The notes beneath the pieces were generated by a model, which was not told where the DNA came from, did not search any database, and saw only the letters and a list, made by a program, of their open reading frames with translations. Below are positions 30,463-48,512 of a stretch of 64,000 bases of DNA, piece by piece. The stretch is from the IMG/VR virus record IMGVR_UViG_3300023179_005186, positions 248,001-312,000 of that record. One strand, 5' to 3'. The position numbers and the translations under genes were made by a program. Every line of letters starts with the position of its first letter. Positions within the stretch are counted from its first letter, which is position 1.

Positions 30463-30828
30463 TTAATTATCAAAATTTTCATAATCATCATTTAATTTAT
30501 TATTATAAAGTGAATTCATGCGAATAGCACAGGGACATACAAATCCTTCTTTTATTTTTTCTGAATTAATTTCAGGAATTACTGTATTACATTTTTTTTC
30601 ATAATAATTAGATTTCAAATCAGGCATACCAAAACCTTCAATTTGACCACATTTTTTTTCATAATAATTAGATTTCAAATCAGGCATACCAAAACCTTCA
30701 ATTTGACCACATTTTTTTTCATAATAATTAGATTTTAAATCAGGCATACCAAAATTCTCTTTGCTATCTAATAAATAAATTATAATAACAATTACTAAAA
30801 GCCATAATATTAAAGCATTTTTATCCAT
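30463..30828 (-). CDS. Small N-anchored membrane protein with 20-aa repeats
   Basis: TM helix, then FGMPDLKSNYYEKKC three times. Confidence 0.75.
   Translation of the reverse strand: MDKNALILWLLVIVIIIYLLDSKENFGMPDLKSNYYEKKCGQIEGFGMPDLKSNYYEKKCGQIEGFGMPDLKSNYYEKKCNTVIPEINSEKIKEGFVCPCAIRMNSLYNNKLNDDYENFDN
30589..30754. repeat. 60-bp tandem repeat, ~2.8 copies, near identical
   Basis: Lines 30601 and 30661 are identical; the third partial copy has one substitution. Confidence 0.95.
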
Positions 30829-31916: not shown

Positions 31917-31941
31917 CACCCATTTACAAAAAAATGGGACA
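31917..31941 (+). repeat. Left TIR of element 1
   Basis: cacccatttacaaaaaaatgggaca; reverse complement of 35977-36001 with one mismatch. Confidence 0.92.
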
Positions 31942-31944
31942 GTT

Positions 31945-32853
31945 TTATTTATGTTTTTTTAAAAATTCATTTGCTCTTAAAAACAAATAATTAATATAAT
32001 TTTCTAAATGTTCTTTTTTAATATCATTTTTTATTATTTCTTTAGTATCTCTAATTATTTCCAAATAATTTTGAGGACTTTTTAATTTTAAATAATGTTT
32101 TAATTGATTAAATAAACCCTCAATCGGATTTGTATTAGGTCTATATCTTACACTATACAAATAATTATTTTCCGTCTCTTCTATTTTACTTTTCACTTCT
32201 TTTGATTTATGAAATATTGCATTATCTAATATTATTACATGATTTTTATATTTATCTTCTATAAATTCCTCAATAAAACTTATAAATTTTTCTTTATTTA
32301 TTCCTCCTGTTTCTTCATAAATTTTTATTCCTATTATTTTTCCATATTTTATTGCACATAAACAATTATATTTTTTATATGGATATAAACCAGTATTATA
32401 ATATGCTCTTCTTCCTTTATCATTTCTTCCATGTTCTCTAACCATATTTACATAAATTGCTGTTTCATCTATTGATATTATTTTATCTTTTGAATGTTTA
32501 ATAAGTATTTTATAAAATGTTTTTAATTCTTGTATTTCATTACCTTTTGATGGAAAATATCTATGTCTTAATTTTTTATATGTTATATTTAGTTCTTTTG
32601 CTAATTGTTTTAATGTTACATTTGGATGTTCTTTTATATGTTGTTTTATAAATTTTTTTTGTTCTTCATTAAATATAATTTTCTTTTTACTATGTTTTTT
32701 TTCTAAATTGTTAGTTTTACTATATTTATCAACCCACCTATTTAATGATGATTTTGAGCATTTAAAAATATCACAAGTTTTTCTATAACTTTGATTATCT
32801 AAATAATATTTTACTGCTGTTAATTTATAATCTATAGAATGATGACTACTCAT
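31945..32853 (-). CDS. IS630/Tc1-mariner family transposase (DD34E)
   Basis: N-terminal HTH (DYKLTAVKYY...SLNRWV); SIDET, ILDNA, NPIE with 34 residues between D and E. Confidence 0.92.
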   Translation of the reverse strand: MSSHHSIDYKLTAVKYYLDNQSYRKTCDIFKCSKSSLNRWVDKYSKTNNLEKKHSKKKIIFNEEQKKFIKQHIKEHPNVTLKQLAKELNITYKKLRHRYFPSKGNEIQELKTFYKILIKHSKDKIISIDETAIYVNMVREHGRNDKGRRAYYNTGLYPYKKYNCLCAIKYGKIIGIKIYEETGGINKEKFISFIEEFIEDKYKNHVIILDNAIFHKSKEVKSKIEETENNYLYSVRYRPNTNPIEGLFNQLKHYLKLKSPQNYLEIIRDTKEIIKNDIKKEHLENYINYLFLRANEFLKKHK

Positions 32854-32874
32854 ATATATAAATAATTTTATAAA

Positions 32875-32882
32875 AAAATTGA
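32875..32882 (+). promoter_or_regulatory. AAAATTGA early-promoter motif inside element 1
   Basis: Exact Mimivirus-type motif ~50 bp upstream of ATG 32933. Confidence 0.6.
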
Positions 32883-32932
32883 AAAACAGTTATAATAAAT
32901 ACTAAAATCATTAAAAAAAATAATACTTAAAA

Positions 32933-33227
32933 ATGAGTTCAATTACTGAAGAAATACAACAATTACAAATAAAATTAAATGAATTAGAAAAGCAAAAAAA
33001 AAGAAAATGAAGAAAATAATAAAAAAACATCTATTAGTTATAATTTTGAAGTTATTAACAATTTATTAAATGAAAAGAAAATAGCAATTACAAATAATAG
33101 ATATTCAAAATCTGTTCCATTAGCAAGATATTATGATCAAGAATTAGTTACACATCTTGAAGCAATTTATAATATACTGCAAGTTTTTAATGAGAGATTA
33201 GATAAATTAGAAAATAATAATAAATAA
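32933..33227 (+). pseudogene. Small coiled-coil ORF (~97 aa) interrupted at an A9 run; not in the ORF track
   Basis: MSSITEEIQQLQIKLNELEKQKK / ENEENNKKTSISYNF...LDKLENNNK*; removing one A at 32994-33002 joins the frames; AAAATTGA at 32875. Confidence 0.7.
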
Positions 33228-33269
33228 TTTTAAACATTATTAAATTTAAAATAAATTTTTATAACAAAT

Positions 33270-33620
33270 TTATTTATGTCTAATTTGATTTATTTTATGC
33301 CTGTCAGTGATTAAATGACGTTCAAATAAATCTTTTGATATTGAACCATAATCACATATTTTACAATAATGTTTAAATCCTTTTTCTCTTTCTTCTAAAG
33401 TTGAATGTTCATTTAATATGTGTTGTTCTAAAATTAATCTATTTTTGGTTTTATAATCACATTTATCACATTTAGTAGGTTCTTTACAATCAGTTCTCTT
33501 TTTTCTTTGTCCTGTTTTATGTAATTCGGTTTTTATATGTGCTTCCCATCGTGCTTTTGTATTACATTTAAAATTACATTTTTCACAATTATATTTTATT
33601 TTTTTTTCATTATTTTCCAT
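33270..33620 (-). CDS. Triple C2H2 zinc-finger protein (element 1 accessory gene)
   Basis: CEKC..HIKTELH, CDKC..HILNEH, CKIC..HLITDRH. Confidence 0.88.
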   Translation of the reverse strand: MENNEKKIKYNCEKCNFKCNTKARWEAHIKTELHKTGQRKKRTDCKEPTKCDKCDYKTKNRLILEQHILNEHSTLEEREKGFKHYCKICDYGSISKDLFERHLITDRHKINQIRHK

Positions 33621-33753
33621 TTAAATATATAAATTATATAAATATATTTTTAAATAAAATTTATAAATATATATTTTAACAGAAAATAAAATATTATAGT
33701 TTATTTAAATTGAAAATGATTTAAAAATTTATTTTTATCTAATATTATAATAT

Positions 33754-35943
33754 ATGAGTATTCCAAAAAAACCACCCGATAAATTTATCACCATTAAATA
33801 TGTTTTGGATAAAATTATTATTAACGATAAACCTGATTGTGAATTAAAAAAAGATGATATTAAAACTATTTTAAATGATACTTGTTTTAGAACAAATCAA
33901 ATTGTTATTCATACTTATCAATTTTTAAGATTATGGATTTTAAATAAATATCATAATAAATTAGATATTCCTATTATCACAGAGGAGCTTATTAAAATGG
34001 TTATGAATACATTATCTATTAAAGATAATAGAGGTAATAAACCTACTGATGAAAATTTAATATTATTAAACGAATTTAATAAATTTTATGAAGAACATTA
34101 TAAAAATTTAAATTATGAAAATAAAATTAACAGTTCATATTTATCCCAAATAATTAATTCAATGGCTACTGATATACTTACCAACATTGAAAATAATATT
34201 AAAATGCATTTTTTAAAATATGTTAATAGATTTGTTAATTCATCATTTAAGAAAATAAATAATAATTTATTGGAAAAAGCAAAAGAAGGAACAAAAACAA
34301 AATTAAGAAAAGAATTAAATAAAGATCTATATGAAATTAAACAAGATTTAATTAATAATACATTGAAATCAAATGAAAAATATCATAAATGGATTAATTC
34401 CCATAGAGACAACATATTTCATAAAGATTTTGTTAATTCCTATGAATTTGATATTCAAAATAATCCACAACGATATTTAAAATCAATGATTTATATGTGC
34501 GAACAAATAGAAAAATTAGAAACAAAATCATTCCAGTTCTTTCCATTAAGAACAGATATTATAAACAAATTTATTCCGATTGACACCAAAAGTTTAATTG
34601 AATTATTTATTAAAAAAGATAAAGCAAAATATTTAGATGATGTTGAATCATATAAAGAACCTGTATGGTCTATGTTATTTGATATAAATAAAGATATGTT
34701 TAAACAATCAAATTATATATTTGATTATAAAATATATACAGATGGTTATTCGGTATCAATTCAAATGTTATTAAATGATAAAGTTAAAGATGAAAAACAA
34801 AAAAAACAAAATATGAAAAATAAAAGAAAAGAAAATAAAGAATTAACAAAAAATATGACTGAAGAACAAAAAACAGAATTTAAAAAGAAATGCGAGGAAC
34901 AAAAGAAAAAACAAGATAAAGAGTTTAAATTAAAGTTAAAAGAGCAAAAAGATAAAGAGAAAGAAGAATTTAAAAAATTACCAAAAGAAGAACAAAATAA
35001 GATATTAGAAAAGAGAAAACAAGAAATTAAGGAAGCGAAAATATTAAATGGAACAGACTTTTTATATTTGGAAGATTTAAATGATAAACAATTAGAAGAA
35101 GTTAAAAATAATAATTTTTTATGTTGCGATCCTGGAAAGAATACCTTACTCCATATGAAAGATAAAAATGGTAAAAAATACAGATATACAAACAGAAAGC
35201 ATGCTAAATTAACTAAAAGATTAAAATATCAAAGACTTATTCAAAATTATAAAGATAAAAATGATATATCAAAAGTTGAAAATGAATTAACTAAATATAA
35301 CTCAAGAACTTGTGATTTAAATAAATTTAAAGAATTTATTAAAAATAAAAACAAAATTAATGCTATGTTATTTGAAAAGTATAATAAAGAAATATTTAGA
35401 AAATATAAATGGTATGGTTTTTTAAATAGAAAACACACAGAAACTAAAATGATAAAAGAAATTAAAAATACATTTGGTAAAAATTCAATAATATTTTATG
35501 GTGATTTTGGATTTAAAACAAATTGTCATAAAGGTAATATATCAACACCAAATAATAGATTAAAAAGATTAATTGGAAAACAAATGAAATTATATAATTT
35601 AGATGAATTTAGAACCTCAAAATTAAATTATAAAACAGAAGAAGTGTGTGAAAATTTATATTTACTAGATTTAAAAGGAAAGTCAAGAAAATTACATTCA
35701 GTTTTAACATATAAAATGGAAAACAAACAAATTGGATGTATAAATCGTGATGAGAATGCGGTAAATAACATGATAAAAATAGTAAATCATTATCTGAATA
35801 AAAAAGAGAGATTATTAAAATATCGAAGGGATTATGATTTAGAGAAAGGCGAATTAAAAGCTGAAACCAAACAAAAGGTGATAACCTCCATCAAAAATGA
35901 CACTAAAAATCGGGAGGTCAAGTATCAACCATGCTCGAAATGA
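33754..35943 (+). CDS. Fanzor (Fanzor1-like, TnpB-related RNA-guided nuclease)
   Basis: RuvC triad CCDPG / LDEFRTSK / NRDENA; IYTDGYSVSI; FFPLR; 729 aa; lies within the TIRs. Confidence 0.9.
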   Translation: MSIPKKPPDKFITIKYVLDKIIINDKPDCELKKDDIKTILNDTCFRTNQIVIHTYQFLRLWILNKYHNKLDIPIITEELIKMVMNTLSIKDNRGNKPTDENLILLNEFNKFYEEHYKNLNYENKINSSYLSQIINSMATDILTNIENNIKMHFLKYVNRFVNSSFKKINNNLLEKAKEGTKTKLRKELNKDLYEIKQDLINNTLKSNEKYHKWINSHRDNIFHKDFVNSYEFDIQNNPQRYLKSMIYMCEQIEKLETKSFQFFPLRTDIINKFIPIDTKSLIELFIKKDKAKYLDDVESYKEPVWSMLFDINKDMFKQSNYIFDYKIYTDGYSVSIQMLLNDKVKDEKQKKQNMKNKRKENKELTKNMTEEQKTEFKKKCEEQKKKQDKEFKLKLKEQKDKEKEEFKKLPKEEQNKILEKRKQEIKEAKILNGTDFLYLEDLNDKQLEEVKNNNFLCCDPGKNTLLHMKDKNGKKYRYTNRKHAKLTKRLKYQRLIQNYKDKNDISKVENELTKYNSRTCDLNKFKEFIKNKNKINAMLFEKYNKEIFRKYKWYGFLNRKHTETKMIKEIKNTFGKNSIIFYGDFGFKTNCHKGNISTPNNRLKRLIGKQMKLYNLDEFRTSKLNYKTEEVCENLYLLDLKGKSRKLHSVLTYKMENKQIGCINRDENAVNNMIKIVNHYLNKKERLLKYRRDYDLEKGELKAETKQKVITSIKNDTKNREVKYQPCSK

Positions 35944-36021
35944 GTGCAATTATACCTTTAATTTACAAAAAAAGAGTGTCCCAATTTTTTGTAAATGGGT
36001 GTAATATCACTTTTATAAGAA
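35874..36021 (+). ncRNA. Putative Fanzor omegaRNA of element 1 (scaffold plus flank-derived guide); boundaries approximate
   Basis: Nested stems in a locally GC-richer stretch between the Fanzor 3' end and the right TIR; position expected for TnpB/Fanzor RNAs. Confidence 0.65.
35977..36001 (-). repeat. Right TIR of element 1
   Basis: tgtcccaattttttgtaaatgggtg followed by TA. Confidence 0.92.
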
Positions 36022-36557
36022 AATAGTTGTATAATAATTTTTTCTATTCTATTTTTTTTAGATTTATTATCATCATCAATTTCATTATTTATAATTGTTA
36101 AAGCATATATTTGATGTTTTTTTGAAATTAAAAATTTTTTATTTTGAACTACCATATAAATACCAAAATCTCTTTTATTTTTATTTATATAATTATCAAA
36201 GGAATATTCCTTAATATGTTTTATGGTTTGATTATCACTTAAATTATTCATAATATTTATCCATAATGCTTTGAATCTATTACTAAAAGAATTTGTTTGA
36301 TTTAGATTATTATCATAATAAGTTGTGGTTAAAGCTATTTTTCCTTCATATTCAACTATATTTTTATTATAAAAATATAGTTCATAGTCACATGTTTTTA
36401 TAAAACTAATAAATTTATCAACATTATCTTTAATATATTGAAAAAAATATGAAAATATTGTTAATACAATAGTAGTTACAAATACATCAATTACTGGTAT
36501 ACCAATTTTAAATTTATCATATAATATCATATTAAGAATTTTTTCTAATTGAATCAT
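36002..36557 (-). pseudogene. BCS1-like AAA+ ATPase, 5' part
   Basis: N-terminal TM; ...LFSYKSDI joins in frame to NTIKEYVENI...KLIDKIDFF after removing the element and one TA. Confidence 0.88.
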
Positions 36558-36600
36558 ACTTTACATACAATAAATAATGTATTAATCTTTATATTTAATT

Positions 36601-36768
36601 TTAATCAATTGGAAAATTTTTACATTTTGTATAATCGGGTCGATAATCATTACAATTACCATCTTCATTATAAATTTGATTAACATAAATAAAACCTTCT
36701 TTAGTATTTAATATTTTTATAATAATAAGAATTAACAATAATAAAATAATAATATTATCTTTATCCAT
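36601..36768 (-). CDS. 55-aa TM + KEGF-motif microprotein; not in the ORF track
   Basis: MDKDNIIILLLLILIIIKILNTKEGFIYVNQIYNEDGNCNDYRPDYTKCKNFPID*. Confidence 0.7.
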   Translation of the reverse strand: MDKDNIIILLLLILIIIKILNTKEGFIYVNQIYNEDGNCNDYRPDYTKCKNFPID

Positions 36769-36878
36769 GATATAATAATATTGATAAAATATTTTTTATA
36801 ATAAAATAAACTTATTGGGTGGAGAATTAAACTTTATAATTCCACTATAATAAAGTTTTTTTTTATATTATAAATTAT

Positions 36879-38033
36879 ATGGAAAAAAAATCACAATCTA
36901 CTATTAATACTTCTAATAAAAAAAATTCAGATAATGAAAATTCATTATTACCATCAAAAAAAATGGAAATTAATTATGAAAATCTTCAAAAAAGTAAAAA
37001 TTATGTTATTAAAAATAATTATTGGAATGATAAACACGAATCAATTTTACAAAATTTACAAAAAAATTCTAATAAATTATACAGAGAATATCAAAAGGCT
37101 CATATTGTATATAAAAAAAAGTTAAGATTATACAGAATTCCAATTATTATAATGTCAGGTTTAAGTGGATTTCTATCTATTTCTAATAGTGGATATATAC
37201 CAACTGACTATCAACAGTGGATATCATTATTTGTTGGTTTTGTAAATTTAATGGTAACAATAATTTCTTTAATAGAAAATTTTAAGAAAATAGATGTTAA
37301 TGTTAATAAAACATACATATCATACATGGAATTTAAGAAATTACACGATGAAATTTCCTTAATATTAAATACTCCACAAAATGAACGTGATGGAAATGGT
37401 TATGATGTTTCATTAATATTCTTTAATAGATATGAAGCATATATTGCAGATGCACCAATATTACAAAAAGTTATGCATGATTATTTAGATAATAATTCAC
37501 CAGATAATAAAAGTCAAACAATTATTGATAGTGGATCTGATGATTTAACTGATAATATTATTGTTATGAATGATGATGATATTGAATCTCGATACATTCC
37601 AAGTAAAGAAAAATTAAAACAAATATTGTTTAATACTAAATCTGATAATTCAAATAAAATTAAAAATATTGATGTTTTTAAAAAAATTCAAGAAAATAAA
37701 ATATCAAACAAAACAATAAATTCTGATCGTATAAAAAAAGTAAATAGATTTCAAGAACAATTTGAATCAATGGATCAAGAGGTTAATAAAAAAATAGATG
37801 AAAATATAAACAAAGTAAATTTAGAAAATAATTTAACAATAAATAAAGAAAATTTTCCTAAACTAAAAAATATTAAACCAAATTATGATGAAGAAATAAT
37901 TTTTAATGAATTAACAGAAATTAAATTTAGTAATATAGATGATAATTTAATTAATTTAATTGAAGATTCAGGCGATGATTTAGTTGAAGAAGTTATAAAA
38001 AATAATGATTCTGATAGTTCAACTGAATATTAA
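36879..38033 (+). CDS. Two-TM SLATT-like protein with a charged tail
   Basis: W..KHESIL...YRIPIIIMSGLSGFLS, second TM helix, then the pattern typical of the giant-virus SLATT-like family. Confidence 0.55.
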   Translation: MEKKSQSTINTSNKKNSDNENSLLPSKKMEINYENLQKSKNYVIKNNYWNDKHESILQNLQKNSNKLYREYQKAHIVYKKKLRLYRIPIIIMSGLSGFLSISNSGYIPTDYQQWISLFVGFVNLMVTIISLIENFKKIDVNVNKTYISYMEFKKLHDEISLILNTPQNERDGNGYDVSLIFFNRYEAYIADAPILQKVMHDYLDNNSPDNKSQTIIDSGSDDLTDNIIVMNDDDIESRYIPSKEKLKQILFNTKSDNSNKIKNIDVFKKIQENKISNKTINSDRIKKVNRFQEQFESMDQEVNKKIDENINKVNLENNLTINKENFPKLKNIKPNYDEEIIFNELTEIKFSNIDDNLINLIEDSGDDLVEEVIKNNDSDSSTEY

Positions 38034-38614
38034 AAATTATAATAAATTATAGAAATTGCTAATCCAAAAAAAAGTGTCCCAGTTCCAAATAATCTAGTAT
38101 TTTTCATTACATTTATTAACTCATTTTTACTTGGTTCATTTGAAACTGGACATGATTTTTTAAAAAAATCTAATGTTTGTGATTGATCTTTATTATAATA
38201 TAATTCTTGACAACCCATATGTATAAGAGATAATACTAATAATGTAATTATAAAAGGTAAAATCTCAAAAAATTTTTTTGAATTTATAATATACATAGCT
38301 GTTAAAATTGATAAAAATTTTAAGATATCTGAAATATGATCATAATAATCACCAAATATTGTTACCATATTATATTTTCTTGCCATATGTCCATCTAAAC
38401 AATCAAAAAAATACGATACAATTACAAAAAATGCTGCTAAATAATATTGTGATTTAAATAATAAGATAACAACAATTATTGCAACAATATTTGATAAAGT
38501 CGTAATTGTATTTGGTTGAAAACCATAATCATAAACAACTGGTAATGTTATATCTGATAATTCTATTATATAATTGTCAAAAGGATTTTCTATTTCTATA
38601 GGTATTTTCCTCAT
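38030..38614 (-). CDS. CDP-alcohol phosphatidyltransferase
   Basis: PNTITT; DCLDGHMARKYNMVTIFGDYYDHISD signature. Confidence 0.9.
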   Translation of the reverse strand: MRKIPIEIENPFDNYIIELSDITLPVVYDYGFQPNTITTLSNIVAIIVVILLFKSQYYLAAFFVIVSYFFDCLDGHMARKYNMVTIFGDYYDHISDILKFLSILTAMYIINSKKFFEILPFIITLLVLSLIHMGCQELYYNKDQSQTLDFFKKSCPVSNEPSKNELINVMKNTRLFGTGTLFFGLAISIIYYNF

Positions 38615-38740
38615 ATAAATTATATTTATATTATAAAAAAATACATTACAAAATATTGAAATTTACATGCTAAAAATTTAAAAAAAAATAATATTTTAGA
38701 ATGAAAATAATTATTTTTTTTTATATAAGTAAACTTAATA

Positions 38741-40894
38741 ATGAATTTAAAAAAAGATAATGTAAAAGATGATTTAGAAAAAGAATTAAACTTGTTAGAA
38801 AATAATCAAGCAATTATAGATATTGTTTTATCCATGGAACAAGAATTAATTGTTGAATCAAATAATAATATATTAGTTGATGCTGTTGCAGGTTCTGGGA
38901 AAACAACTACTATTTTACATATGGCATTGAGACATCCAAACGCGAATATAATACAAATAACTTATAATAATATGTTAAAAAGAGAAGTTAGAAAAAAAGT
39001 AAATAGATTAGCAATTAAAAATATGATAATTCATACATATCATAGTTTAGCTGTAAATTTTTATGATGAATCAGCATATACAGATGAAGAAATAAAAAGA
39101 TTATTGTTTCAAAATAAACCTATAAAATATAAAGATATTAAACCAATTGATATTTTATTAATTGATGAAACTCAAGATATGGCTCAAGATTATTATAATT
39201 TAGTAAGAAAATTTATTAATGATACAAAATCGATACCAAGAATCGTAATTTTAGGCGATAGATATCAAGCTATATATGAATTTAAGGGAGCTGATTCAAA
39301 ATTTTTAACTTTAGCTGATAAAATATGGAATATTGAATTTGAAAAGTTAAATTTAACAACATCATATAGATTAACCGATCAAATTTCATGGTTTGTAAAT
39401 AAAATTATGTTGAATAAAAAAAGAATTTGTACAGTAAAATCTGGTCCTCCTGTAGATTATTATGTAGGTAATTCTTATACTCTATACAGAAAATTAGGTA
39501 AACAAATTAGATCAATGATTAAAAAAGAAGGAATTAAAGAAGAGGATATATTTATTTTATCACCTAGTATTAAATCATTAGAACCACCTTTTAAAAAATT
39601 AGAAAATTATTTAGTAAAACATGGTCTAAAATGTATAACACCAGTATCAGATGATTCTAAGTTAGATGAAAAGGTAATATCAAATAAAATAGTTTTTACA
39701 ACATATCATCAAGCAAAGGGTCGTGAAAGAAAAGTAATAATTTTATATAATTTTGATGATTCATATACACAATTTTTTTTAAAGTCAAATGATTCTAATA
39801 ATATATGTCCAAATATTTTATATGTGGGTGCTACTAGATCATCATATAAACTTATAGTTATTCAAGATAATAAATATAAACCATTAAATTTTTTAAATAT
39901 TAAATATCTTAAACAAAATGAAAATTTAAATTATATTATTGTTAATGAACAAATTTTAGAAAATATTAATTTAGGATTAAAATCTACACAAATAAAAAAA
40001 ACAAGTGTAACAGATTTAATTAAATTTTTAAATCCCAAAACTATTGATTTAATTCTAAATATTATTACTTATTCAAAAGAAAATAATTTATATGAAATAA
40101 TTAAAAAACCATCTATAAAAATAGATATACCTAATAAAATTAAAATTACAAATATTATTTCAAATAAAGAAGTTATTACATGGGAAGATGTTTCAGATTT
40201 AAATGGTCTTGTAATACCTGCTATATATGAAAGAATTTTATTAAAAAAAAATTCTACAATTGAAAATTATTTAGAAACACAAATATCTGAATTAAATCCA
40301 ATTTTAGATGATTTAAAAAAATATATTAAAAAATTAAAAATCCCTGCTACTAAACCTGAAGATTTTTTATTAATTGGTAATATATATCAGGCATTAAATA
40401 ATAAATTATATGCAAAAATTGCTCAAATAAAAAAATATGATTGGTTAGATATAAATCATGTTTTTCAATGTCATAATTATATGAATTTTATTTTAGATCC
40501 AAATATTAAATTTGAAGTTCCTCTAATATCATCAAATCAAGAAAATTGTTTTATTTACGAACATAAAGAATTTGGTAATATACATATTACATCAAGACTA
40601 GATGCCATTGATTCTAAAAATATTTGGGAATTTAAATGTGTAGATCATTTAAATTTAGATCATAAATTACAATTAATTATATATTATTGGATTTATTCTA
40701 AATGTTTTATGCAAAAAATTTATGGAAAAAAAGATTTTATTTTGTTAAATATTAAATCTGGTGAAATGTTAAAATTAAAACCAGATAATTATTTAATTGA
40801 AAATATAATTGAATTAATCTTACAGGATAAGTATGGTGAAAAAAAACAATTAGATGATGATGAATTTATAAATTTAATTGTAAATAAAAATTGA
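38741..40894 (+). CDS. UvrD-like SF1 helicase with a C-terminal PD-(D/E)XK nuclease-like domain
   Basis: AVAGSGKTT, IDETQD, LGDRYQAIY, SYR, TYHQAKGRE, LYVGATR; RLDAID..WEFK..LQLIIY. Confidence 0.85.
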   Translation: MNLKKDNVKDDLEKELNLLENNQAIIDIVLSMEQELIVESNNNILVDAVAGSGKTTTILHMALRHPNANIIQITYNNMLKREVRKKVNRLAIKNMIIHTYHSLAVNFYDESAYTDEEIKRLLFQNKPIKYKDIKPIDILLIDETQDMAQDYYNLVRKFINDTKSIPRIVILGDRYQAIYEFKGADSKFLTLADKIWNIEFEKLNLTTSYRLTDQISWFVNKIMLNKKRICTVKSGPPVDYYVGNSYTLYRKLGKQIRSMIKKEGIKEEDIFILSPSIKSLEPPFKKLENYLVKHGLKCITPVSDDSKLDEKVISNKIVFTTYHQAKGRERKVIILYNFDDSYTQFFLKSNDSNNICPNILYVGATRSSYKLIVIQDNKYKPLNFLNIKYLKQNENLNYIIVNEQILENINLGLKSTQIKKTSVTDLIKFLNPKTIDLILNIITYSKENNLYEIIKKPSIKIDIPNKIKITNIISNKEVITWEDVSDLNGLVIPAIYERILLKKNSTIENYLETQISELNPILDDLKKYIKKLKIPATKPEDFLLIGNIYQALNNKLYAKIAQIKKYDWLDINHVFQCHNYMNFILDPNIKFEVPLISSNQENCFIYEHKEFGNIHITSRLDAIDSKNIWEFKCVDHLNLDHKLQLIIYYWIYSKCFMQKIYGKKDFILLNIKSGEMLKLKPDNYLIENIIELILQDKYGEKKQLDDDEFINLIVNKN

Positions 40895-41430: not shown

Positions 41431-42251
41431 TTATTTTTACACCATTCACTTACTAAACATTTTATACTACCAAGTTCATCCCAGGTATATTTAACAAGAT
41501 CAAAAGGTATTTTTAAATTTTTATAATTACTTTTTGTTCTTTTTTTAACTGGTAAGATTTTATCTAAATAATTAATTAATTCTTTTAATTTTTCTAAATT
41601 TTTAAATCTAATATTCATGCATTCAAGGATTTCAATTATTGATAAATTACGATGATGAATAATATTATCATCTATAGTATCATTAATAATACCAATTTTT
41701 TTTTTTATATTAATATTATTTCGAAAAATACAATTATATTTTAGATATTTATATAATTCTTCAACTGATTCAAATAATTGATAATTTGAAAATTTATTTA
41801 TAAAATCACAAATGATTTCTGTAATTTTATTTTTGATTTTTAATTCATCAATACCGTATTCTTTAAAATCTATTGTATTATCAATAATATCAAATTTATC
41901 AACCCATCTTAAATATATAGTTTTTGAATCCTGTTCAATACTCCATATTATATCATAATAATAATTTGAAGAATTATCCATATAACATTCTATATCAAAA
42001 ATTTCTTTCTTCAAATAATATGATATCGTTATAATATTTGGTGTATTTATTAAAGGAAATTGTTTAGTAACATTTTCTAAAAATATATCCACAATATTTT
42101 GACAATGTTCTTTAATAAAATTTGAATTCTTACTTTTAATTTTTAAATTAATAGTTGATGGATCAAAATTAATTTCTTTTATATTCAATCTATTTGATTT
42201 CATCTCACGTTCTAAATCTTTAACACACACTATTTTATTAAAATTTTCCAT
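41427..42251 (-). CDS. Hypothetical protein
   Basis: 274 aa ORF; AAAATTGA upstream at 42285-42292. Confidence 0.55.
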   Translation of the reverse strand: MENFNKIVCVKDLEREMKSNRLNIKEINFDPSTINLKIKSKNSNFIKEHCQNIVDIFLENVTKQFPLINTPNIITISYYLKKEIFDIECYMDNSSNYYYDIIWSIEQDSKTIYLRWVDKFDIIDNTIDFKEYGIDELKIKNKITEIICDFINKFSNYQLFESVEELYKYLKYNCIFRNNINIKKKIGIINDTIDDNIIHHRNLSIIEILECMNIRFKNLEKLKELINYLDKILPVKKRTKSNYKNLKIPFDLVKYTWDELGSIKCLVSEWCKNN

Positions 42252-42315
42252 TATTAATTATTACTATTTAGTATAAATAAAAATTCAATTTTTTTTTAAT
42301 TATTAGTCTATAACA

Positions 42316-42428
42316 CTATATGTTACTAATATCCATTTTACTTTTTATTATATTAATAATTTCGTTAGTAACTTTACTAATTGTGATTTTTATTAATATA
42401 TCAATTCTTTTTTTTTTATTACTTTTTA
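42316..42428 (-). pseudogene. Orphaned 3' end of the gene disrupted by element 2
   Basis: After excision ...KKELTIL continues KSNKKKRIDILIKITISKVTNEIINIIKSKMDISNI* (TAG 42316-18). Confidence 0.7.
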
Positions 42429-42432
42429 CACC

Positions 42433-42470
42433 TTTGCACATTTAAAATGCTGACCTTTTAAATATGCAAA
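42433..42470 (-). terminator. 15-bp hairpin directly after the transposase stop codon, overlapping the left TIR
   Basis: tttgcacatttaaaa-(8 nt)-ttttaaatatgcaaa; the single mismatch is a G-U pair on the minus-strand transcript. Confidence 0.55.
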
Positions 42471-43487
42471 TTATTTATAATTTTTTAATGTTTTTCTTCT
42501 ATTTGAAGGTTTCTTAACATATTTTTCAGTTCTATTATATGTTCCTTTTATGATATTTTCATATTTTTCTTTTGGTATTTCTTTAACTACCTTATTAATA
42601 TTTTCTTTTAGTTCTTTATGAGTTAAACCATCTAATTTATACAATCTTGATTTCATCATACTAAAGTAATTTTCAATACTATTTGTAAAATGTTGATATG
42701 GAACACTATATAATAATGTGTTATGCTTATTCACTAATTCCTTTATTTTTGCGTTTCTATGACTACTTGCATTATCTAAAATTATTAATTTATTTTTATA
42801 TTTTGTAGTAATGTGTTTTTCTAAAAATTCATATAATCTATCACTATCAATGCCACCTTTTTCATATAAATCCCAACCTAAAACACCATTATAAGATATT
42901 GCAAATATTCCAGTATATTTTTTGAATACTTCTTGTGATTGTGTTTTTATTACACATCTTTTACCTAATTCACTATAATATTGATGTCTTTTCTGTAATC
43001 CACTAATACTTGTCTCATCAATACATATAATATCTTCTAATTTATGCTTTTTTATTTCATCATAGAATTCTTTTAATTTTTGATTTATATTTATTTCTTT
43101 TCCAAATCTCTTTTCTGGTTCATGTCTTATTCTTGTTATTTTTAATGTAATATTGTTATCATTAACAATTCTATTGATATGAAAACGACTTAATTCAATC
43201 TTAAAATTTTCTTTTAATTTATGTTTTAATTCTGTAATTGTAATTGTTTTATTCTTTTTAATTTCATATAATAAAAATTTAACATGTTCTTTATGAACTT
43301 TATATGCAACTGGTTTTCTATTTTCTCTTTTTATTTCACCATCTTTTTTATATTTTTCAACCCATCTTATTAAACTTCTTGGACTACATTTAAATATTTC
43401 ACATACTTCTAATTGTAATTTATCACCGACCAAATAATATTCTACGGCAGATAATTTATAATCTTCGCTTTTATGTTTAGATGTCAT
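42471..43487 (-). CDS. IS630/Tc1-mariner family transposase (DD33E)
   Basis: DYKLSAVEYY...SLIRWV HTH; CIDET, ILDNA, NSIE with 33 residues between D and E. Confidence 0.92.
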   Translation of the reverse strand: MTSKHKSEDYKLSAVEYYLVGDKLQLEVCEIFKCSPRSLIRWVEKYKKDGEIKRENRKPVAYKVHKEHVKFLLYEIKKNKTITITELKHKLKENFKIELSRFHINRIVNDNNITLKITRIRHEPEKRFGKEININQKLKEFYDEIKKHKLEDIICIDETSISGLQKRHQYYSELGKRCVIKTQSQEVFKKYTGIFAISYNGVLGWDLYEKGGIDSDRLYEFLEKHITTKYKNKLIILDNASSHRNAKIKELVNKHNTLLYSVPYQHFTNSIENYFSMMKSRLYKLDGLTHKELKENINKVVKEIPKEKYENIIKGTYNRTEKYVKKPSNRRKTLKNYK

Positions 43488-43551
43488 ATACTTAATATTA
43501 TGGCATAAAATATTTAAAATTATGTTATAATATAATTATAGTAAATAAAAT

Positions 43552-43816
43552 ATGAATGAAGAAATTGATATTTTGAAACTTGAAATTGAAGAACTCAAAA
43601 AAAAAGAATGTTGAGTTAGAAGAAAAATTAAAGTTATATACTAATCCAGAACGGAATAAAAAATATTATGAAAAGAATAGTAATGTTGTTAAAGAAAAAG
43701 CAAAAACGTATATGGAGAAAATAAAAGAAACAAATCCAGAAAAATTAAAAGAATGGAGACATACAGCATACTTAAATAGAAAGGCAAAATTAAAAAGTCA
43801 AACTGAAATTAATTAA
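43552..43816 (+). pseudogene. Small coiled-coil/basic ORF (~87 aa) interrupted at an A9 run
   Basis: MNEEIDILKLEIEELKKK / NVELEEKLKLYTNPERNKKYY...; removing one A at 43597-43605 joins the frames. Confidence 0.7.
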
Positions 43817-44453
43817 TAAAATTTTCATATTCATTATTTTTACACATATAAATATTTTGAATAATATTGTCTGTTTTTATTTTTTCAATATTATTTATTA
43901 ATTCAGTTTTCCAATCATATATATCGTTGAATACATCTGATTGTAATATACGAATAACAGAATAACCATTATTATTTGCGCATTTTTCTTTGTATTTATC
44001 ATTTTCTAATTGTTCTTCTGGAGATGACCAATTGCTTACTTGTTCAAAATGTTGTCTTCCATCAAGTTCAATAATAATTTTATTTTCTTCAATACAAAAG
44101 TCAAAAGGAATAAATCTTATATTTTTACACCAAACAACTTTATATTGCTTTATTATATTTACATATATATTATATAAATATTCATATAATATTGTTTCAG
44201 TTTTATTTTGACAATGAGGACAACCAGTATTATTAGATAAATATTTATTATAATCATTTCCACATTTATCGCAATCAAATATAAATTCTTTATAACAAAC
44301 TTTAAAAACATTTCGTGGTTTAATAATATTTTTTATGCTCCACTTTATAACATCTTTGTGAGATGCATATGATTTATTGAAACAATCAAGACAGTCTTCA
44401 TTATAACATAATTTTTTATTTGCACAATAAGGACACCAAACACCATTGTTACA
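43809..44453 (-). pseudogene. Zinc-ribbon + DUF559/Vsr-like PD-(D/E)XK endonuclease, 3' part; not in the ORF track
   Basis: ~215 open codons with no start: WCPYCANKKLC..CLDCFNKSYASH..W..KPRNVFK..FDCDKCG..GCPHC..PFDFCIEENKIIIELDGRQHF..NDKYK..GYSVIRI. Confidence 0.85.
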
Positions 44454-44525
44454 ATAAAGAAATATTATAAAGCAATTTTAACTTTTTAAGCATTATAAAT
44501 TTTTTATCTAATATACTATTATAAT

Positions 44526-45055
44526 ATGAATATTTTTAAAACATTAATACATAAGAAAATCAAATATAAATATGTTTTTGTGATATTTGCGGACTAATTT
44601 CATTTTTTAAATTAGATAAAAAATTTATTACTAATTTTGAAAGTTTATTAAAGAAACATAGACCAAGTGATATAAATTTTACTTATACAAAAATTTTAGA
44701 TGAAGATATTTTGTCATACCTAAATTATAATCATAAAGTTTTTTATCAAATTATATACAACCCTGTTAATTATGATATTATTACAATTGCTAGTATATCA
44801 ATGATTTCGATCGATAAATGTGTTTTAACAATGGTACACACTAATGAGAAATACAGAAATCTAAAATTTTGTCAAAAAAATATTAATTTACTTATTAAAA
44901 ATATGTTTGATAATTTTAAAAATATTAAAAAATATATTTTGTATGTCGATAAGGACAATATATATGCAATTAAATGTTATGAAAAATGTAATTTTATTAT
45001 AATTGAACTTAAGAAAGATAATAAATATTTAATGGAATTAAATAAAATAAGATAA
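44526..45055 (+). pseudogene. GNAT acetyltransferase, frameshifted near 44575 (captured cargo)
   Basis: VHTNEKYRNLKFC, LYVDKDNIYAIKCYEKCNF; upstream ATG 44526 is one base out of frame at a T5 run. Confidence 0.7.
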
Positions 45056-45066
45056 ATTTACTGATA

Positions 45067-46197
45067 TTAAATTAGTTCACCAACACCAACAATTGTTATC
45101 ATTGGTTGTTTTCTACAAATTAAAATTTTTGAATCTTTACTAATGCATGTTGGTTTAATTAATTGTATTGAAAACCTTGTTCCTTTAATTTTTGTAAGTC
45201 GAGCTTCAGATGTCATATTTTCAATTTGTAAAAATATTTGATCTCCATTTTTTGGTTCCCATATGTCATTAATTTTTGTAAATTGAATATCAATGTCATG
45301 ATAAACCTCTGGTAATTGTCCTACAGGTCCTAGTACATTTCCACATAACATATTATTACCTTTACAAAAATACGGATCAACAGTTGTACGAATAGCAACT
45401 AATCCACCTGGATTTATTTCTTCAATAATATTATTATTAGTTTCAAATGATAATGTTGTTAAAATTGGTTCAGAAGTATATCTTCCATTTTTACCTTTTG
45501 TTAAAATACCAGGTCTTATTTCAACTTCATCATTAATTTTTAAATTTCCTGAAACTAATGTTCCTCCTAAACATCCACCTAATACTTCATTATATGGCGT
45601 ACCTGGTTTATTAATATCAAATGTTCTTGTAATTCTGAATAATGTATTTCCTGTTGAAGTTTGATTATTACTAAAATATTTATCAATTGCTTCAATAAGA
45701 AAATTTTTACCACAACTGTTTGTAAATGATGTGGGTATAATAATATTAGGTATAATTCCTAATTCTAATAAAATATCATTTAATTCATTATATCTTTCAA
45801 TAACAATACTTTTACTTTGTAAATCACATTTATTCAAACAAATAATTATATTGGAGATATTTGCCAATTTAGCTGTTAATAAATGTTGTCTTAGTTGAGG
45901 TTTTTCTTTTAAACTGGTTTCTACTGAAACAATTACGATTGCTCCTTTCATTAACGCTACTGAACTCATCATTGTTGTTATTAATTCCTGATGCCCAGGG
46001 CAATCGGCAAATGAAATATATTTAATTAAATTACAATTATTACTACATGTTTCACAATTATATTCTAATAATTTTTCTCCTGATGAATATTTAGCTTGAC
46101 AAATATCACACTTCCAAATTTTTAAATTTGCATAACCAGCATTAATTGTAATATTTTTAATTAATTATCTACTATCTCGTTGTGTTTTTCTCCGGTT
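45067..46197 (-). pseudogene. Translation initiation factor eIF2-gamma, 5'-truncated with an internal stop (captured cargo)
   Basis: KTQRDSR*LIKNITINAGYANLKIWKC..C..C..C..ISFADCPGH, NKCD, RTFDINKPG, EIRPG; P-loop absent. Confidence 0.88.
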
Positions 46198-46294
46198 TAA
46201 TATTTTCAGGTTTTAATTCATTTTTATCGCTCCAATATTTTGCTTTTTCATGTGATGCAAATGATTTTTCAAAAGGTATTTTATTATCTGTCAT
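46198..46294 (-). pseudogene. 5' end of the zinc-ribbon endonuclease gene
   Basis: MTDNKIPFEKSFASHEKAKYWSDKNELKPENI matches the repeat FNKSYASHKDVIKWSIKNIIKPRNV in the 3' part; AAAATTGA at 46333-46340. Confidence 0.8.
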
Positions 46295-46332
46295 TATATA
46301 ATTTAATAATTATTAATTTATATAATTTTATA

Positions 46333-46340
46333 TCAATTTT
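46333..46340 (-). promoter_or_regulatory. AAAATTGA early-promoter motif inside element 2
   Basis: Exact motif ~40 bp upstream of ATG 46294. Confidence 0.6.
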
Positions 46341-46403
46341 TTATTAATAATTTTTAATGCGTAAAACTATTTAAAATATAATCTTTAGTAATAATATATA
46401 GAA

Positions 46404-48398
46404 ATGAAAAAATCAAAACCAAAAGTTAAAGAAAAGAAAAAAGATGAAGAAAATTTTGATTACATGAAAACTAATAAGGACAATATTAAGAATGTTATAA
46501 GAGATAATGATTTATTACCAGTTATTAATGATATTACCATAAGAACCAATAAAATTGTTATTCATTCATACCAATTCTTAAAATTATATTTATTGCATCT
46601 TTATGAAAATAATCAACCTTTTCCAGTTTTAGATAAAGAATATATTTGTGATATTTTTAAAGTTATTACAAAACGTAAATGTAATAGTGGTGGTTATACT
46701 GAAGAAAAAATGCCTCAACAATTAAAAACACTAAATGACTTTTATAAAAATCATTATTTATTAACTATTGCTAATAATGAAGTTCTTTATTATGATAAAT
46801 TATCATATATTCTTGCTTATGAAGCGATAGATATGATTACTAATATTACAAATAATATTCAAGAACATTTTATTGACCATCTTAATAGATATGTTAATAT
46901 TGTATTTGATATTAAGGCAAAACGTGAAGAAATAACTAAAAATAATAAAGATAAGGAAATTAGAAAGCAATTACATAAGGTATTATATGAAGAAATAAAT
47001 AAAGTTAAGAAAGATTTAATTACATTTGGAGAATTTACAAGTGATGTTAAATATCATAATTGGATTAAGGAACAAAAATTAAAATTATTTCCAAATAAAA
47101 CAGAATTTGAAGAAAATAATATTTATTATGAACTTAAATTAAATACACAATACTTTCTTTATGGTATGTTTCATATTTCAACTGAATTAGAAAAAAACAA
47201 TAATATAAGAATTCAAAATGATGAAAAACAAATAAGATTATTTAATGTATTACCATTAAGAACTAATATTATTCCTAAAAATGTATGTATAGACACATGT
47301 GGATTAATTCAAAATTTTATGGGTGATGAATACGATAGCAAATTATTAACAACTTATAAAAAAGAAAATAAATATTTTGAATTATGGAATAAATATTTTA
47401 AGTTAAATAAAAGAGTATTCAAAAAAGGTAAAAATTATACATTTTCTTACATGATAAGAACTGATGGTATATCATGCTGTGTATTATTTGTAAAAGTTGA
47501 TAAAAATGGAAAACCATTAGCAAAAACATATGCAAATAAAAAATGTTGTCAAGAAGAAAATATTGATTATATTGAAAAAGCAAATGTAGATAATATTAAA
47601 CATAAAAAGTTTGTTGTTGCTGACCCCAATTACAGCGATTTAATATATTGTGGTTATAAAGATGAAAATGATAATTTAATAACATTTCGTTATACACAAA
47701 ACCAAAGAAGATTAGAAACACGAATGAAAAAATATAGTAAAATTAAAGATAAATTAAATAAAGAAACTATTATAAATGAAAAGTCAGTAAAAGAATTAGA
47801 AACAACACTATCAAAATTAAATTCAAAAACATGTTCTTATGACAAATTTAAAACATATTGTGTTGAAAAGAATAAATTAAATTATCAACTATATTCACAT
47901 TATGAACAAAGATGTTTTAGAAAATTTAAATTAAATGCATTTACAAATACTCAAAAAAGCGAAAATAAAATGATAAATAATTTTCAAAAAAAATATGGAA
48001 AACCAGAAGAAACTATATTTGTTATGGGAGATTACGATAAAGGCGATTATAATATGAAGGGAAAAGAACCAGTAATATGTAAAAAATTTAGAAGAATATT
48101 TAGAAATGCTGGTTATACCACATTTTTAGTAAATGAATTTAGAACATCAAAATTATGTAATTGTTGTAATGCAGAATTAGAATATTTTTTGGAAAGACCA
48201 AGCAAGAAACCAAAATTAATAAAAGAGGGAAAAACAGAAATATGTCATGGATTATTACGATGTAAGTCGGTTAAGCATAAAAGCGAAATATTCCATAACA
48301 GAGATAAGAATGCTGTGCAAAATATGTTAAATATAGTCAAATCGGTTCTACGAACAGGAAAACGACCAGATATATTTTGTAGAGAAATACATTCTTAA
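46404..48398 (+). CDS. Fanzor (Fanzor1-like, TnpB-related RNA-guided nuclease)
   Basis: VADPN / VNEFRTSKLCNCC / HNRDKNA; IRTDGISC; homologous to 33754-35943 (RTNKIVIHSYQFLKL vs RTNQIVIHTYQFLRL). Confidence 0.9.
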   Translation: MKKSKPKVKEKKKDEENFDYMKTNKDNIKNVIRDNDLLPVINDITIRTNKIVIHSYQFLKLYLLHLYENNQPFPVLDKEYICDIFKVITKRKCNSGGYTEEKMPQQLKTLNDFYKNHYLLTIANNEVLYYDKLSYILAYEAIDMITNITNNIQEHFIDHLNRYVNIVFDIKAKREEITKNNKDKEIRKQLHKVLYEEINKVKKDLITFGEFTSDVKYHNWIKEQKLKLFPNKTEFEENNIYYELKLNTQYFLYGMFHISTELEKNNNIRIQNDEKQIRLFNVLPLRTNIIPKNVCIDTCGLIQNFMGDEYDSKLLTTYKKENKYFELWNKYFKLNKRVFKKGKNYTFSYMIRTDGISCCVLFVKVDKNGKPLAKTYANKKCCQEENIDYIEKANVDNIKHKKFVVADPNYSDLIYCGYKDENDNLITFRYTQNQRRLETRMKKYSKIKDKLNKETIINEKSVKELETTLSKLNSKTCSYDKFKTYCVEKNKLNYQLYSHYEQRCFRKFKLNAFTNTQKSENKMINNFQKKYGKPEETIFVMGDYDKGDYNMKGKEPVICKKFRRIFRNAGYTTFLVNEFRTSKLCNCCNAELEYFLERPSKKPKLIKEGKTEICHGLLRCKSVKHKSEIFHNRDKNAVQNMLNIVKSVLRTGKRPDIFCREIHS

Positions 48399-48512
48399 AA
48401 TTCATATCCGTTTCAAGACGGATTATAATCAAATTTTTGCATTTTTGTTTATTTTTTCGTCGTTAATTCGGCGTTTTAAATGTGCAAAGGTGTAAAATAG
48501 TTAATTCTTTCT
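48355..48512 (+). ncRNA. Putative Fanzor omegaRNA of element 2; boundaries approximate
   Basis: Hairpins atccgt/acggat (48406-48423) and cgtcg/cggcg (48458-48473); possible aacgac/gtcgtt pairing; abuts the right TIR. Confidence 0.55.
48469..48492 (-). repeat. Right TIR of element 2
   Basis: cggcgttttaaatgtgcaaaggtg followed by TA. Confidence 0.92.

Follow-up and report, generated by a model that had tools for sequence, protein, structure and literature searches.

Two IS630/Tc1-mariner-type transposons with Fanzor1 in a giant-virus genome, their small companion genes and their cargo

A stretch of 64,000 nucleotides (nt) of the IMG/VR virus record IMGVR_UViG_3300023179_005186 (positions 248,001 to 312,000 of that record), hereafter called the window, was analyzed for two mobile elements, element 1 and element 2. 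Each of them is bounded by terminal inverted repeats (TIRs) with TA on both sides and contains a gene for an IS630/Tc1-type transposase, a gene for a Fanzor1 protein, a presumed structured RNA and additional small genes. The coordinates are collected in Table 1. Taken as a whole, the best explanation, to which a probability of roughly 70% was assigned, is that the window harbors two independent insertions of DNA transposons of the IS630/Tc1-mariner superfamily with Fanzor1, which belong to a large family of elements in giant-virus (Nucleocytoviricota) genomes.

Table 1. Positions of the two elements and of the features in and around them (window numbering)
Feature	Position	Strand	Remark
Element 1	31917-36001		inverted ends, TA both sides
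TA target-site duplication, left of element 1	31915..31916		removal of element and one TA restores host open reading frame
Left TIR of element 1 (CACCCATTTACAAAAAAATGGGAC...)	31917..31950	+	imperfect inverted repeat
Transposase of element 1, IS630/Tc1-type, 302 aa	31945..32853	-	intact; Pfam DDE_3 E 7e-19 and HTH_28/HTH_23
Lineage-specific small reading frame sm1	32933..33227	+	broken
3xC2H2 zinc-finger protein, 116 aa, isoelectric point (pI) ~9.3	33270..33620	-	Pfam zf-C2H2; conserved small accessory gene, element-1 type
Fanzor1 of element 1, 729 aa	33754..35943	+	intact; DPG / EFRTS / NRD motifs; match to SpuFz1 8GKH E 6.1e-19
Presumed omega-RNA scaffold of element 1	35860..36001	+	overlaps Fanzor 3' end and right TIR
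Right TIR of element 1	35968..36001	-	imperfect inverted repeat
TA target-site duplication, right of element 1	36002..36003
BCS1-like AAA-ATPase host gene, 3' part	30905..31916	-	interrupted by element 1
BCS1-like AAA-ATPase host gene, 5' part	36004..36557	-	interrupted by element 1
Element 2	42429-48492		inverted ends, TA both sides
TA left of element 2	42427..42428		flank TTTTA
Left TIR of element 2 (CACCTTTGCACATTTAAAA...)	42429..42453	+
Transposase of element 2, IS630/Tc1-type, 338 aa	42471..43487	-	intact; Pfam DDE_3 E 2e-15; DD34E read from translation
c2 gene	43552..43816	+	frameshifted; conserved small helical protein of this element type
Homing-endonuclease-like gene, DUF4379 (zinc-ribbon) and DUF559 (PD-(D/E)XK-like), C-terminal piece	43827..44442	-	Pfam DUF559 E 1.7e-7 and DUF4379
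Same DUF4379-DUF559 gene, N-terminal piece	46209..46294	-	ZnN matches of 75-88%
Foreign filler, 1,766 bp	44443..46208		replaces 774 bp of the endonuclease gene (DUF4379 repeats)
GNAT acetyltransferase, C-terminal fragment, in filler	44711-45055	+
eIF2-gamma-like GTPase pseudogene, in filler	45067 to ~46200	-	in-frame stops; ~20 N-terminal residues missing
Fanzor1 of element 2, 664 aa	46404..48398	+	intact; DPN / EFRTS / NRD motifs, CxxC...C...C zinc finger; SpuFz1 8GKH E 1.4e-44
Hairpin 1 of presumed omega-RNA (ATCCGT / ACGGAT)	48406..48423	+	directly after Fanzor stop of element 2
Hairpin 2 (CGTCG / CGGCG), 5 bp	48458..48473	+	runs into right TIR; weaker support than hairpin 1
Right TIR of element 2	48468..48492	-
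TA right of element 2	48493..48494		flank TAAAA

The TIR arms of element 1 comprise 39 nt including the flank and are 90% complementary; their 24-nt core occurs twice in the window, with zero occurrences expected. In-silico deletion of 31917-36001 together with one TA fused the open reading frame (ORF) at 35958-36557(-) to that at 30905-31720(-), which yielded a single frame of 521 amino acids (aa) for a BCS1-like AAA-ATPase. Orthologues with about 80% identity on other giant-virus contigs read through this site without interruption (for example 536 aa at L183:2206-3816, L numbers denoting the collected loci). Both the frame regained on excision and these read-through orthologues identify element 1 as an insertion and demonstrate its TA target-site duplication against an empty site. 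The target was TATTAATA, whose central TA was duplicated, and the virus appears to carry a knocked-out copy of the AAA-ATPase gene. The transposase of element 1 has a DD35E triad with the motifs IDET, LDNA and NPIE, as read from the translation. The small ORF sm1 opens with an ATG at 32933 and ends at a stop after 25 codons, due to a 1-nt insertion that was recognized by comparison with a sister copy (L209). Only in this sister copy is sm1 intact (98 aa), and the 11 synonymous versus 9 non-synonymous codon differences suggest that it was recently a real gene. No homologue of sm1 was found in the other loci collected and no match was obtained in Pfam, PHROG, the protein atlas or a PDB fold search; sm1 is cargo and not a component of the family.

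The ends of element 2 are perfect 19-nt inverted repeats (42429-42447 and 48474-48492; two matches against 0.04 expected in the window). Its transposase, in which a helix-turn-helix domain was also matched, is 94% identical to that of an intact 5,095-bp relative (L030). Across the two transposases, the helix-turn-helix matches were to HTH_28, HTH_23 and HTH_32. Comparison with this relative confined the homology of element 2 to 42429-44442 and 46209-48492, the sequence between them being foreign filler. L030 has an intact endonuclease gene of 495 aa with the domain order DUF4379x5-DUF559. The corresponding gene of element 2 was destroyed through the replacement of 774 bp by 1.77 kb of captured viral gene fragments, and element 2 probably descends from a form with transposase, endonuclease and Fanzor1 like that of L030. 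No donor eIF2-gamma copy besides the one inside element 2 was found on the same contig; the nearest full-length viral eIF2-gamma genes (402-412 aa, 71% identical) lie on other contigs among other neighbors. In the c2 gene of the window, which opens with an ATG at 43552, the frame is shifted within a run of nine A (A9, 43597-43605), so that only a TTG-started remnant (43580-43816) is open; orthologues are intact and measure 82-110 aa.

Both Fanzors match the solved Fanzor1 structures SpuFz1 8GKH, PpFz1 and GtFz1, and their DPN/DPG, EFRTS and NRD catalytic motifs could be aligned. The Fanzor of element 2 also gave a weak match to the Pfam family Cas12f1-like_TNB. Element 2 has a complete Fanzor zinc finger, whereas that of element 1 is degenerate, with its cysteines partly lost: around residues 615-660 (35650-35800) the CxxC pair that is retained by the element 2 Fanzor and by SpuFz1 is missing and the RuvC motifs are kept.

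The transposases of the two elements are 35% identical to each other and the Fanzors 30-33%, and the TIRs have only CACC in common. An earlier note, made from the letters alone, had described the locus as two mariner-Fanzor transposons with well-diverged proteins, TIRs that differ beyond CACC, a C2H2 triplet in element 1 and a structured RNA behind each Fanzor gene. All of this was borne out, by the TIRs, TA flanks, DDE_3 transposases and Fanzor1 matches, by the zf-C2H2 match and, for the RNA, by a covarying hairpin in element 2 and compensatory helices in the lineage of element 1. The range that it had assigned to the elements (31917-48492) is not element throughout, as 6.4 kb of ordinary viral genes lie between elements 1 and 2. 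A composite transposon spanning this range was considered and rejected, because the TIRs differ, each element has its own TA flanks and the intervening genes are ordinary viral ones. Both elements are real, partly decayed copies, with open transposase and Fanzor ORFs and decayed accessory and cargo genes.

To place these two copies, relatives were collected from giant-virus contigs in three samples: the two Fanzors of the window retrieved 106 loci, a c2 profile 76 and a C2H2 profile 75. The Fanzor-anchored sample is unbiased as to the small genes and contains 77 distinct Fanzor genes, 72 of which were evaluable. TIR pairs were delimited in approximately 50 elements and fall into three end types: type A (CACCC/CACCGACC...) includes element 1, type B (CACCTTTGCACATTTAAAA...) includes element 2, and type C is the third (CAGCGGGGAC...). 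At least 32 type B copies have different flanks. When the ORFs within the TIRs were clustered, three recurrent families emerged, which were the transposase, Fanzor and c2 (43 of 51 elements), along with many sporadic ones. Of the 72 evaluable Fanzor genes, 54 are preceded by c2 on the same strand and 12 by a C2H2 gene on the opposite strand; six are without either small gene, and in no case were the two found together. Pooling of all samples (n = 119) gave 80 loci with c2, 32 with C2H2, seven with neither and again none with both. Transposase and Fanzor distances are tightly correlated (Spearman 0.90 in the endonuclease-bearing subset).

Several reduced or compound forms were seen in the census. 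Elements of approximately 2.6 kb with the order TIR-c2-Fanzor-TIR and no transposase occur at L145:7901-10467 and L163:7888-10462, and the same form with a DUF7487 insert at L166:7807-11969. The element at L046:7749-10051 is a 2.3-kb TIR-Fanzor-TIR form with a transposase remnant only. At L036:1620-6436 and L120 a complete Fanzor gene is followed by a second, partial one and then by an inverted Fanzor fragment with a transposase tail; these arrangements look like nested or tail-to-tail insertions of related elements. One metagenome-assembled genome (IMGVR_UViG_GVMAG-M-3300013127-27) gave more than ten separate matches to Fanzor or C2H2 queries on the contigs L002, L004, L026, L081, L209, L211, L215, L220, L221, L224, L226, L227 and L263, which suggests that these elements have proliferated strongly in a single genome or that the assembly is broken up at repeated copies.

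The c2 protein has about 88 aa, 16 of which are invariant across lineages. The AlphaFold (AF2) model is all-helical, with a mean predicted local distance difference test (pLDDT) value of 87, and consists of a 28-residue N-terminal helix and three further helices. The N-terminal part, a coiled coil, is acidic with a pI of 4.7; the remainder of the protein is basic, with a pI of 10.0. The ratio of non-synonymous to synonymous substitution rates (dN/dS) of c2 is 0.10-0.27, the same as that of the transposase and Fanzor genes from the same element pairs, and c2 is, to judge from these ratios, under purifying selection. Pairwise c2 distances follow those of the transposase (rho 0.87) and of Fanzor (rho 0.81). 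In the c2-anchored sample, 57 of the 76 loci have a downstream Fanzor gene; 43 of these also have an adjacent divergent transposase gene, 11, including L145, L163 and L166, have Fanzor only and three have lost the transposase side at a contig end. A search of 1.8 billion cluster representatives with the c2 profile gave proteins of 52-173 aa throughout the best 150 matches listed, with no fusions among them.

The C2H2 proteins have 110-116 aa and all of their Cys/His zinc ligands are invariant in the alignment. Of the 75 C2H2-anchored loci, 36 carry a divergent Fanzor gene on the opposite strand, in most cases at a distance of 110-300 nt; transposase and Fanzor are both present in 19. The C2H2 gene adjoins Fanzor in the lineage of element 1; in type C elements it adjoins the transposase, with the cargo on the other side. 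Owing to its position, its distribution and the mutual exclusion of the two genes, C2H2 corresponds to c2, and the counterpart of the C2H2 gene of element 1 is the c2 gene of element 2 and not the zinc-ribbon endonuclease gene. The core of the family consists of the transposase, Fanzor with its RNA, and one small basic protein that is either c2 or 3xC2H2 and never both; element 1 represents the C2H2 type and element 2 the c2 type. The small proteins may tentatively be regarded as nucleic-acid-binding cofactors or regulators of the Fanzor/transposon module. Their retention with Fanzor in elements that have lost the transposase is a pointer that they may belong to the Fanzor side.

A constant role of the small proteins in the element has to be weighed against a reading in which c2 and C2H2 are passengers without such a role, that is, viral genes captured early by two lineages and kept constant by shared ancestry and by use as landing sites of homing endonucleases. 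A number of observations speak against the former. In the c2-anchored sample, eight of the 76 loci have neither transposase nor Fanzor, and in four of the examined loci the stand-alone c2 gene lies in conserved viral synteny; inverted repeats were absent around it in all four loci that were checked for them. Since such copies stand in conserved synteny without TIRs, c2 is also an ordinary viral gene family, and the idea that they are miniature elements was rejected. It may be that c2 has a role at the level of the virus that is unrelated to transposition and was captured once by an ancestral element. Because no match to c2 was found in Pfam, PHROGs, the protein atlas or a PDB fold search, its putative nucleic-acid binding is read from charge and shape only. 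The distances of C2H2 and Fanzor correlate weakly (rho 0.28), and all of the distance correlations are drawn from related sequences and dominated by a few deep splits. The Fanzor-only element L046 and the six loci with neither gene show that an element can at least persist when the small gene is missing. Finally, the frameshifts in the window could be assembly errors in A-rich runs. Stand-alone c2 genes at L155:7989-8252, L172:5135-5380, L173:7980-8249 and L178:2981-3229 share the same gene neighborhood, and the three of them that were checked have no TIRs.

The passenger reading also draws on the 19 of 75 C2H2-anchored loci without transposase and Fanzor, often with a DUF7487 gene as neighbor, and on the size of the c2 family, which has more than 3,600 clusters at 90% identity (all labeled hypothetical and viral) and 446 representatives at 50%. 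Moreover, decay is tolerated in the copies of the window, where c2 is frameshifted next to intact transposase and Fanzor genes. However, within elements c2 is under purifying selection as strong as that acting on the transposase and Fanzor, in lineages with Fanzors of only about 40% identity, and c2 is kept in the minimal 2.5-kb elements without transposase, from which other cargo is gone. In alternative lineages the equivalent place is taken by one or the other of two small basic proteins, which are unrelated and were never found in the same element. All other cargo turns over quickly. The passenger reading was therefore considered rather unlikely, and a family with one near-constant small gene beside transposase and Fanzor is preferred.

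The remaining genes of these elements behave differently. The gap between c2 and Fanzor was compared in 91 distinct units: it is empty (70-130 nt) in 12, contains a DUF4379-DUF559 gene in 32 (on the minus strand without exception) and a DUF7487 gene in 17 (in either orientation), and is filled otherwise in 30. At least 12 unrelated genes were found in this slot in either orientation. Cargo identified through Pfam and PHROG matches, in this gap or at the cargo positions of type C elements, includes a GIY-YIG nuclease, a ParB-like protein, a DEAD/SNF2-type helicase with HA domains, an M24 peptidase and a P-loop kinase. DUF7487 matches PHROG families annotated as homing endonucleases (E 9e-69). 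In the lineage of element 1, the gap between transposase and C2H2 behaves likewise: the 98-aa ORF, a kinase-like or a beta-lactamase-like gene or a different insert was seen there. Divergence of the endonuclease correlates poorly with that of Fanzor, c2 and the transposase (Spearman 0.15-0.36, compared with 0.90 between transposase and Fanzor in the same subset), and L030 and L031, which differ by 5% in Fanzor, differ by 74% in the C-terminus of the endonuclease. HNH-like or other endonuclease-like genes (DUF7487-type, PD-(D/E)XK-like) also directly follow stand-alone c2 genes (L154, L141 and L182). The gaps beside the small gene are hot spots for the turnover of unrelated cargo, mostly homing-endonuclease-like genes. 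With its nuclease domain, DNA-binding repeats, patchy presence and decoupled divergence, the DUF4379-DUF559 gene would fit a free-standing homing endonuclease. As its occupants vary, diverge independently of the element and also follow stand-alone c2, the slot is read as a probable homing site for free-standing endonuclease genes and other cargo and not as a second accessory position. The endonuclease genes may be selfish passengers that home to the conserved neighborhood of the small gene, a tentative view under which they are not regulators of the element.

The earlier note had instead proposed a four-gene element with two conserved internal positions, one for a small coiled-coil ORF and one for a zinc-binding gene, whose non-homologous products may regulate transposition or Fanzor homing. 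This reading was largely refuted by the census and is considered very unlikely. In its favor, gene order and strands are superficially alike in the two elements of the window, 32 of the 91 units repeat the order transposase(-), c2(+), DUF4379-DUF559(-), Fanzor(+), and in the viral element PGv-1 and its relatives a nuclease gene likewise follows the transposase and precedes the third gene (PMC3627910). Against it, the small ORFs are unrelated, that of element 1 is replaced by other genes in its nearest relatives, the zinc slot is empty in 12 of 91 units and elsewhere taken by non-zinc genes (helicase, ParB, M24 peptidase, P-loop kinase) or by DUF7487 on either strand, the divergence of the endonuclease is decoupled from the element, and C2H2 excludes c2 and hence is the counterpart of c2 and not of the endonuclease. 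The outline of a shared order and orientation was thus retained. The small ORF as a shared slot was not, as sm1 and c2 showed no homology (hhalign probability 0.6%) and both are frameshifted in the window; nor are the two zinc genes counterparts. The zinc-ribbon PD-(D/E)XK gene named for element 2 does have DUF4379 and DUF559 domains and is split in two by the 1,766 bp of foreign DNA, which had gone unmentioned. The comparison that the note had proposed, in which loci are collected, delimited by TIR/TA and tabulated by gene order, was carried out and yielded a large family with one conserved extra gene and a variable cargo slot. A multi-component family with a conserved accessory gene therefore stands, in that 66 of 72 Fanzor genes have c2 or C2H2 as a near-constant third gene, with a different assignment of slots and with the other two genes as cargo.

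The RNA of the core was examined in the same relatives. In elements of types B and C, the interval of 80-100 nt from the Fanzor stop to the right end is conserved. Hairpin 1 occurs in the forms ATCCGT/ACGGAT, AGTCAT/ATGACT, ACCTGT/ACAGGT, ACACAT/ATGTGT and TCACAT/ATGTGA; in five of its six pairs both partners vary, and the pairing is kept in all 19 sequences (100%). Its covariation score of 0.388 (0.204 after shuffling) was reached in none of 500 shuffles, and slid controls scored 0.051-0.134. RNAalifold alone recovered only helix 2, since the aligned part of six sequences does not include the 5' arm of helix 1. The fold of 48300-48492 has a z-score of -4.5. In the lineage of element 1 the distance from the Fanzor stop to the end is 58 nt and the conserved part lies within the 3' end of the Fanzor ORF. 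Here, two helices show compensatory changes among six copies (ACCTCC/GGAGGT to ACTCCC/GGGAGT, and GCTC/GAGT to GCCC/GGGT), and the folding energy of the element 1 region alone is not significant (z -0.13). A third, long-range pairing of an upstream TTTGCA with TGCAAA in the TIR was dropped, since the upstream side varies and the TIR is constant. The arrangement of this putative RNA matches the omega-RNA layout of Fanzor1 and TnpB systems.

The flanks of the elements are equally regular. Type B elements are preceded by TTTTA and followed by TAAAA; the right flank is invariant in 32 of 32 copies and on the left T is found at -5, -4, -3 and -2 in 29, 23, 31 and 32 of the 32, with TA on both sides in every one of these relatives of element 2. 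For type A, the flanks are ATTA and TAAT in all 8 copies. Because the empty site of element 1 has them, the flanking bases belong to the target. Target sites in the form of AT palindromes specific for the end type were seen in the flanks of about 40 elements (for example 42424-42428 and 48493-48497 in the window, and L030, L033 and L008).

From the protein families involved, the following course may be envisaged. The DD34-35E transposase would cut the element out and paste it into a TA within an AT-rich palindrome, TATTAATA for element 1 and TTTTAAAA for the type of element 2. The Fanzor ribonucleoprotein, with the flank beyond the right end as its guide, would cut unoccupied sites, whose repair would restore or spread the element. 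Such a homing model, in which cleavage of unoccupied sites is followed by repair that restores the element, is established for TnpB (summarized in PMC13565253). Many copies at different sites indirectly support mobility driven by the transposase. In an empty type B site the flank that would match the guide is preceded by TTT and in an occupied site by GGTG, which would suit a discrimination of empty and filled sites through a target-adjacent motif (TAM); the TTT of the left flank could be a candidate T-rich Fanzor TAM that marks empty sites.

The kind of element is known. PGv-1 of Phaeocystis globosa virus 12T combines a Mariner transposase, a GIY-YIG endonuclease and Fanzor1 and has parallels in other three-gene viral Mariners (Bao & Jurka 2013, PMC3627910). 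Its likeness to the present elements extends to a chimeric, modular build, with a Tc1/mariner-type transposase and Fanzor1 inside TIRs with TA duplications in a giant-virus genome, and to an endonuclease gene in between; one relative (L066) even carries a GIY-YIG gene in the same slot. By its description, PGv-1 differs in that three proteins per element and no conserved small protein are mentioned (PMC3627910); in the present family the endonucleases (DUF4379-DUF559, DUF7487) are optional cargo and c2 or C2H2 is the near-constant third gene. The PGv-1-like endonuclease gene is destroyed in element 2, element 1 has no nuclease gene, and in the family it is optional. The statement of the earlier note that accessory genes of such elements were uncharacterized accordingly does not hold for the endonuclease gene, described in PGv-1 in 2013, and holds for the small proteins as far as no description of them was found. 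IS630-Tc1-Mariner/Fanzor1 elements, together with Fanzor-only and non-autonomous forms and several families per genome, are also reported for an endogenous giant virus of Chlamydomonas (bioRxiv 10.1101/2024.09.03.611062). In the accessible part of that report, the derivatives match L046, L145 and L163, no accessory small gene or cargo slot is described, and data on expression and virion packaging are given. Associations of Fanzor1c with Mariner/Tc1 were listed by Jiang et al. 2023.

The solved Fanzor1 proteins (SpuFz1 8GKH, PpFz1 9CF0 and GtFz1 9CER) share homology in the WED and RuvC half and the D...E...D motifs with the Fanzors of the window, from which they differ in that the zinc-finger cysteines of the element 1 Fanzor are partly lost. 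A structured 3' RNA that reaches the transposon end is common to the solved Fanzor1 and TnpB omega-RNAs and to these elements. PIF/Harbinger transposons have a DDE transposase and, as a constant partner, a separate Myb-like DNA-binding protein. The likeness of a DDE transposon with a second small, presumably DNA-binding protein is one of analogy only: here the transposase is of the DDE_3/IS630 type, the partner is a helical protein without family match or a C2H2 protein, and c2 stays with Fanzor after loss of the transposase. Membership in PIF/Harbinger was rejected, given the DDE_3/IS630-type transposase and the lack of a Myb/SANT-like partner. The cargo resembles the free-standing homing endonucleases of phages and giant viruses, in which genes with nuclease and DNA-binding repeats sit in a gap beside a conserved gene, with patchy presence, variable orientation and divergence decoupled from the neighbors; the difference is that the host of the endonuclease gene here is a transposon inside a virus. 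No mention of a conserved small protein was found in the accessible part of the literature on Fanzor elements, and a search for Fanzor together with C2H2 returned nothing relevant there. The novelty lies in a core of three genes that includes one of two alternative small proteins, in the cargo hot spot and in the capture of gene fragments.

In the searched collection, the window was matched to positions 240001-304000 of a 315,722-bp contig of the same record. The G+C content of the window is about 18%, and the neighboring genes are typical of giant viruses (UvrD-like helicase, CDP-alcohol phosphatidyltransferase, AAA ATPase). Near-identical sequence occurs in sequencing runs from freshwater and lake metagenomes. 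Of the sampled words of element 2 (42429-48428), 76% were present in a freshwater metatranscriptome run of 2015 (X1) and 20-69% in several lake metagenomes. Just beyond the interrupted ATPase gene, three to four tandem 60-nt repeats that are 98-100% identical (30567-30768) lie within a 121-aa ORF (30463-30828, minus strand), for which no family match was found.

The biology of the window itself is more modest than that of the family, as both elements are partly decayed and one of them knocked out a viral AAA-ATPase gene. The capture of eIF2-gamma and GNAT fragments bears on gene shuffling in giant-virus genomes, and a homing-endonuclease gene in a transposon in a virus amounts to a three-level nesting of selfish DNA. 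Fanzors are in development as compact genome editors. In this clade, 92% of the giant-virus Fanzor genes travel with one of two small basic proteins that are, within the accessible literature, apparently undescribed, and these proteins persist even in minimal elements without a transposase. A speculative view, which was given little weight, is that the giant-virus Fanzor1 systems of the clade are three-part machines whose small basic partner, c2 in most lineages and the unrelated 3xC2H2 protein in others, acts with Fanzor and the omega-RNA, for example in RNA or target handling, in expression or in packaging in the viral factory. This would explain why the small protein stays with Fanzor after the transposase is lost and, if true, c2 and C2H2 would be the first protein cofactor of an OMEGA-type nuclease.

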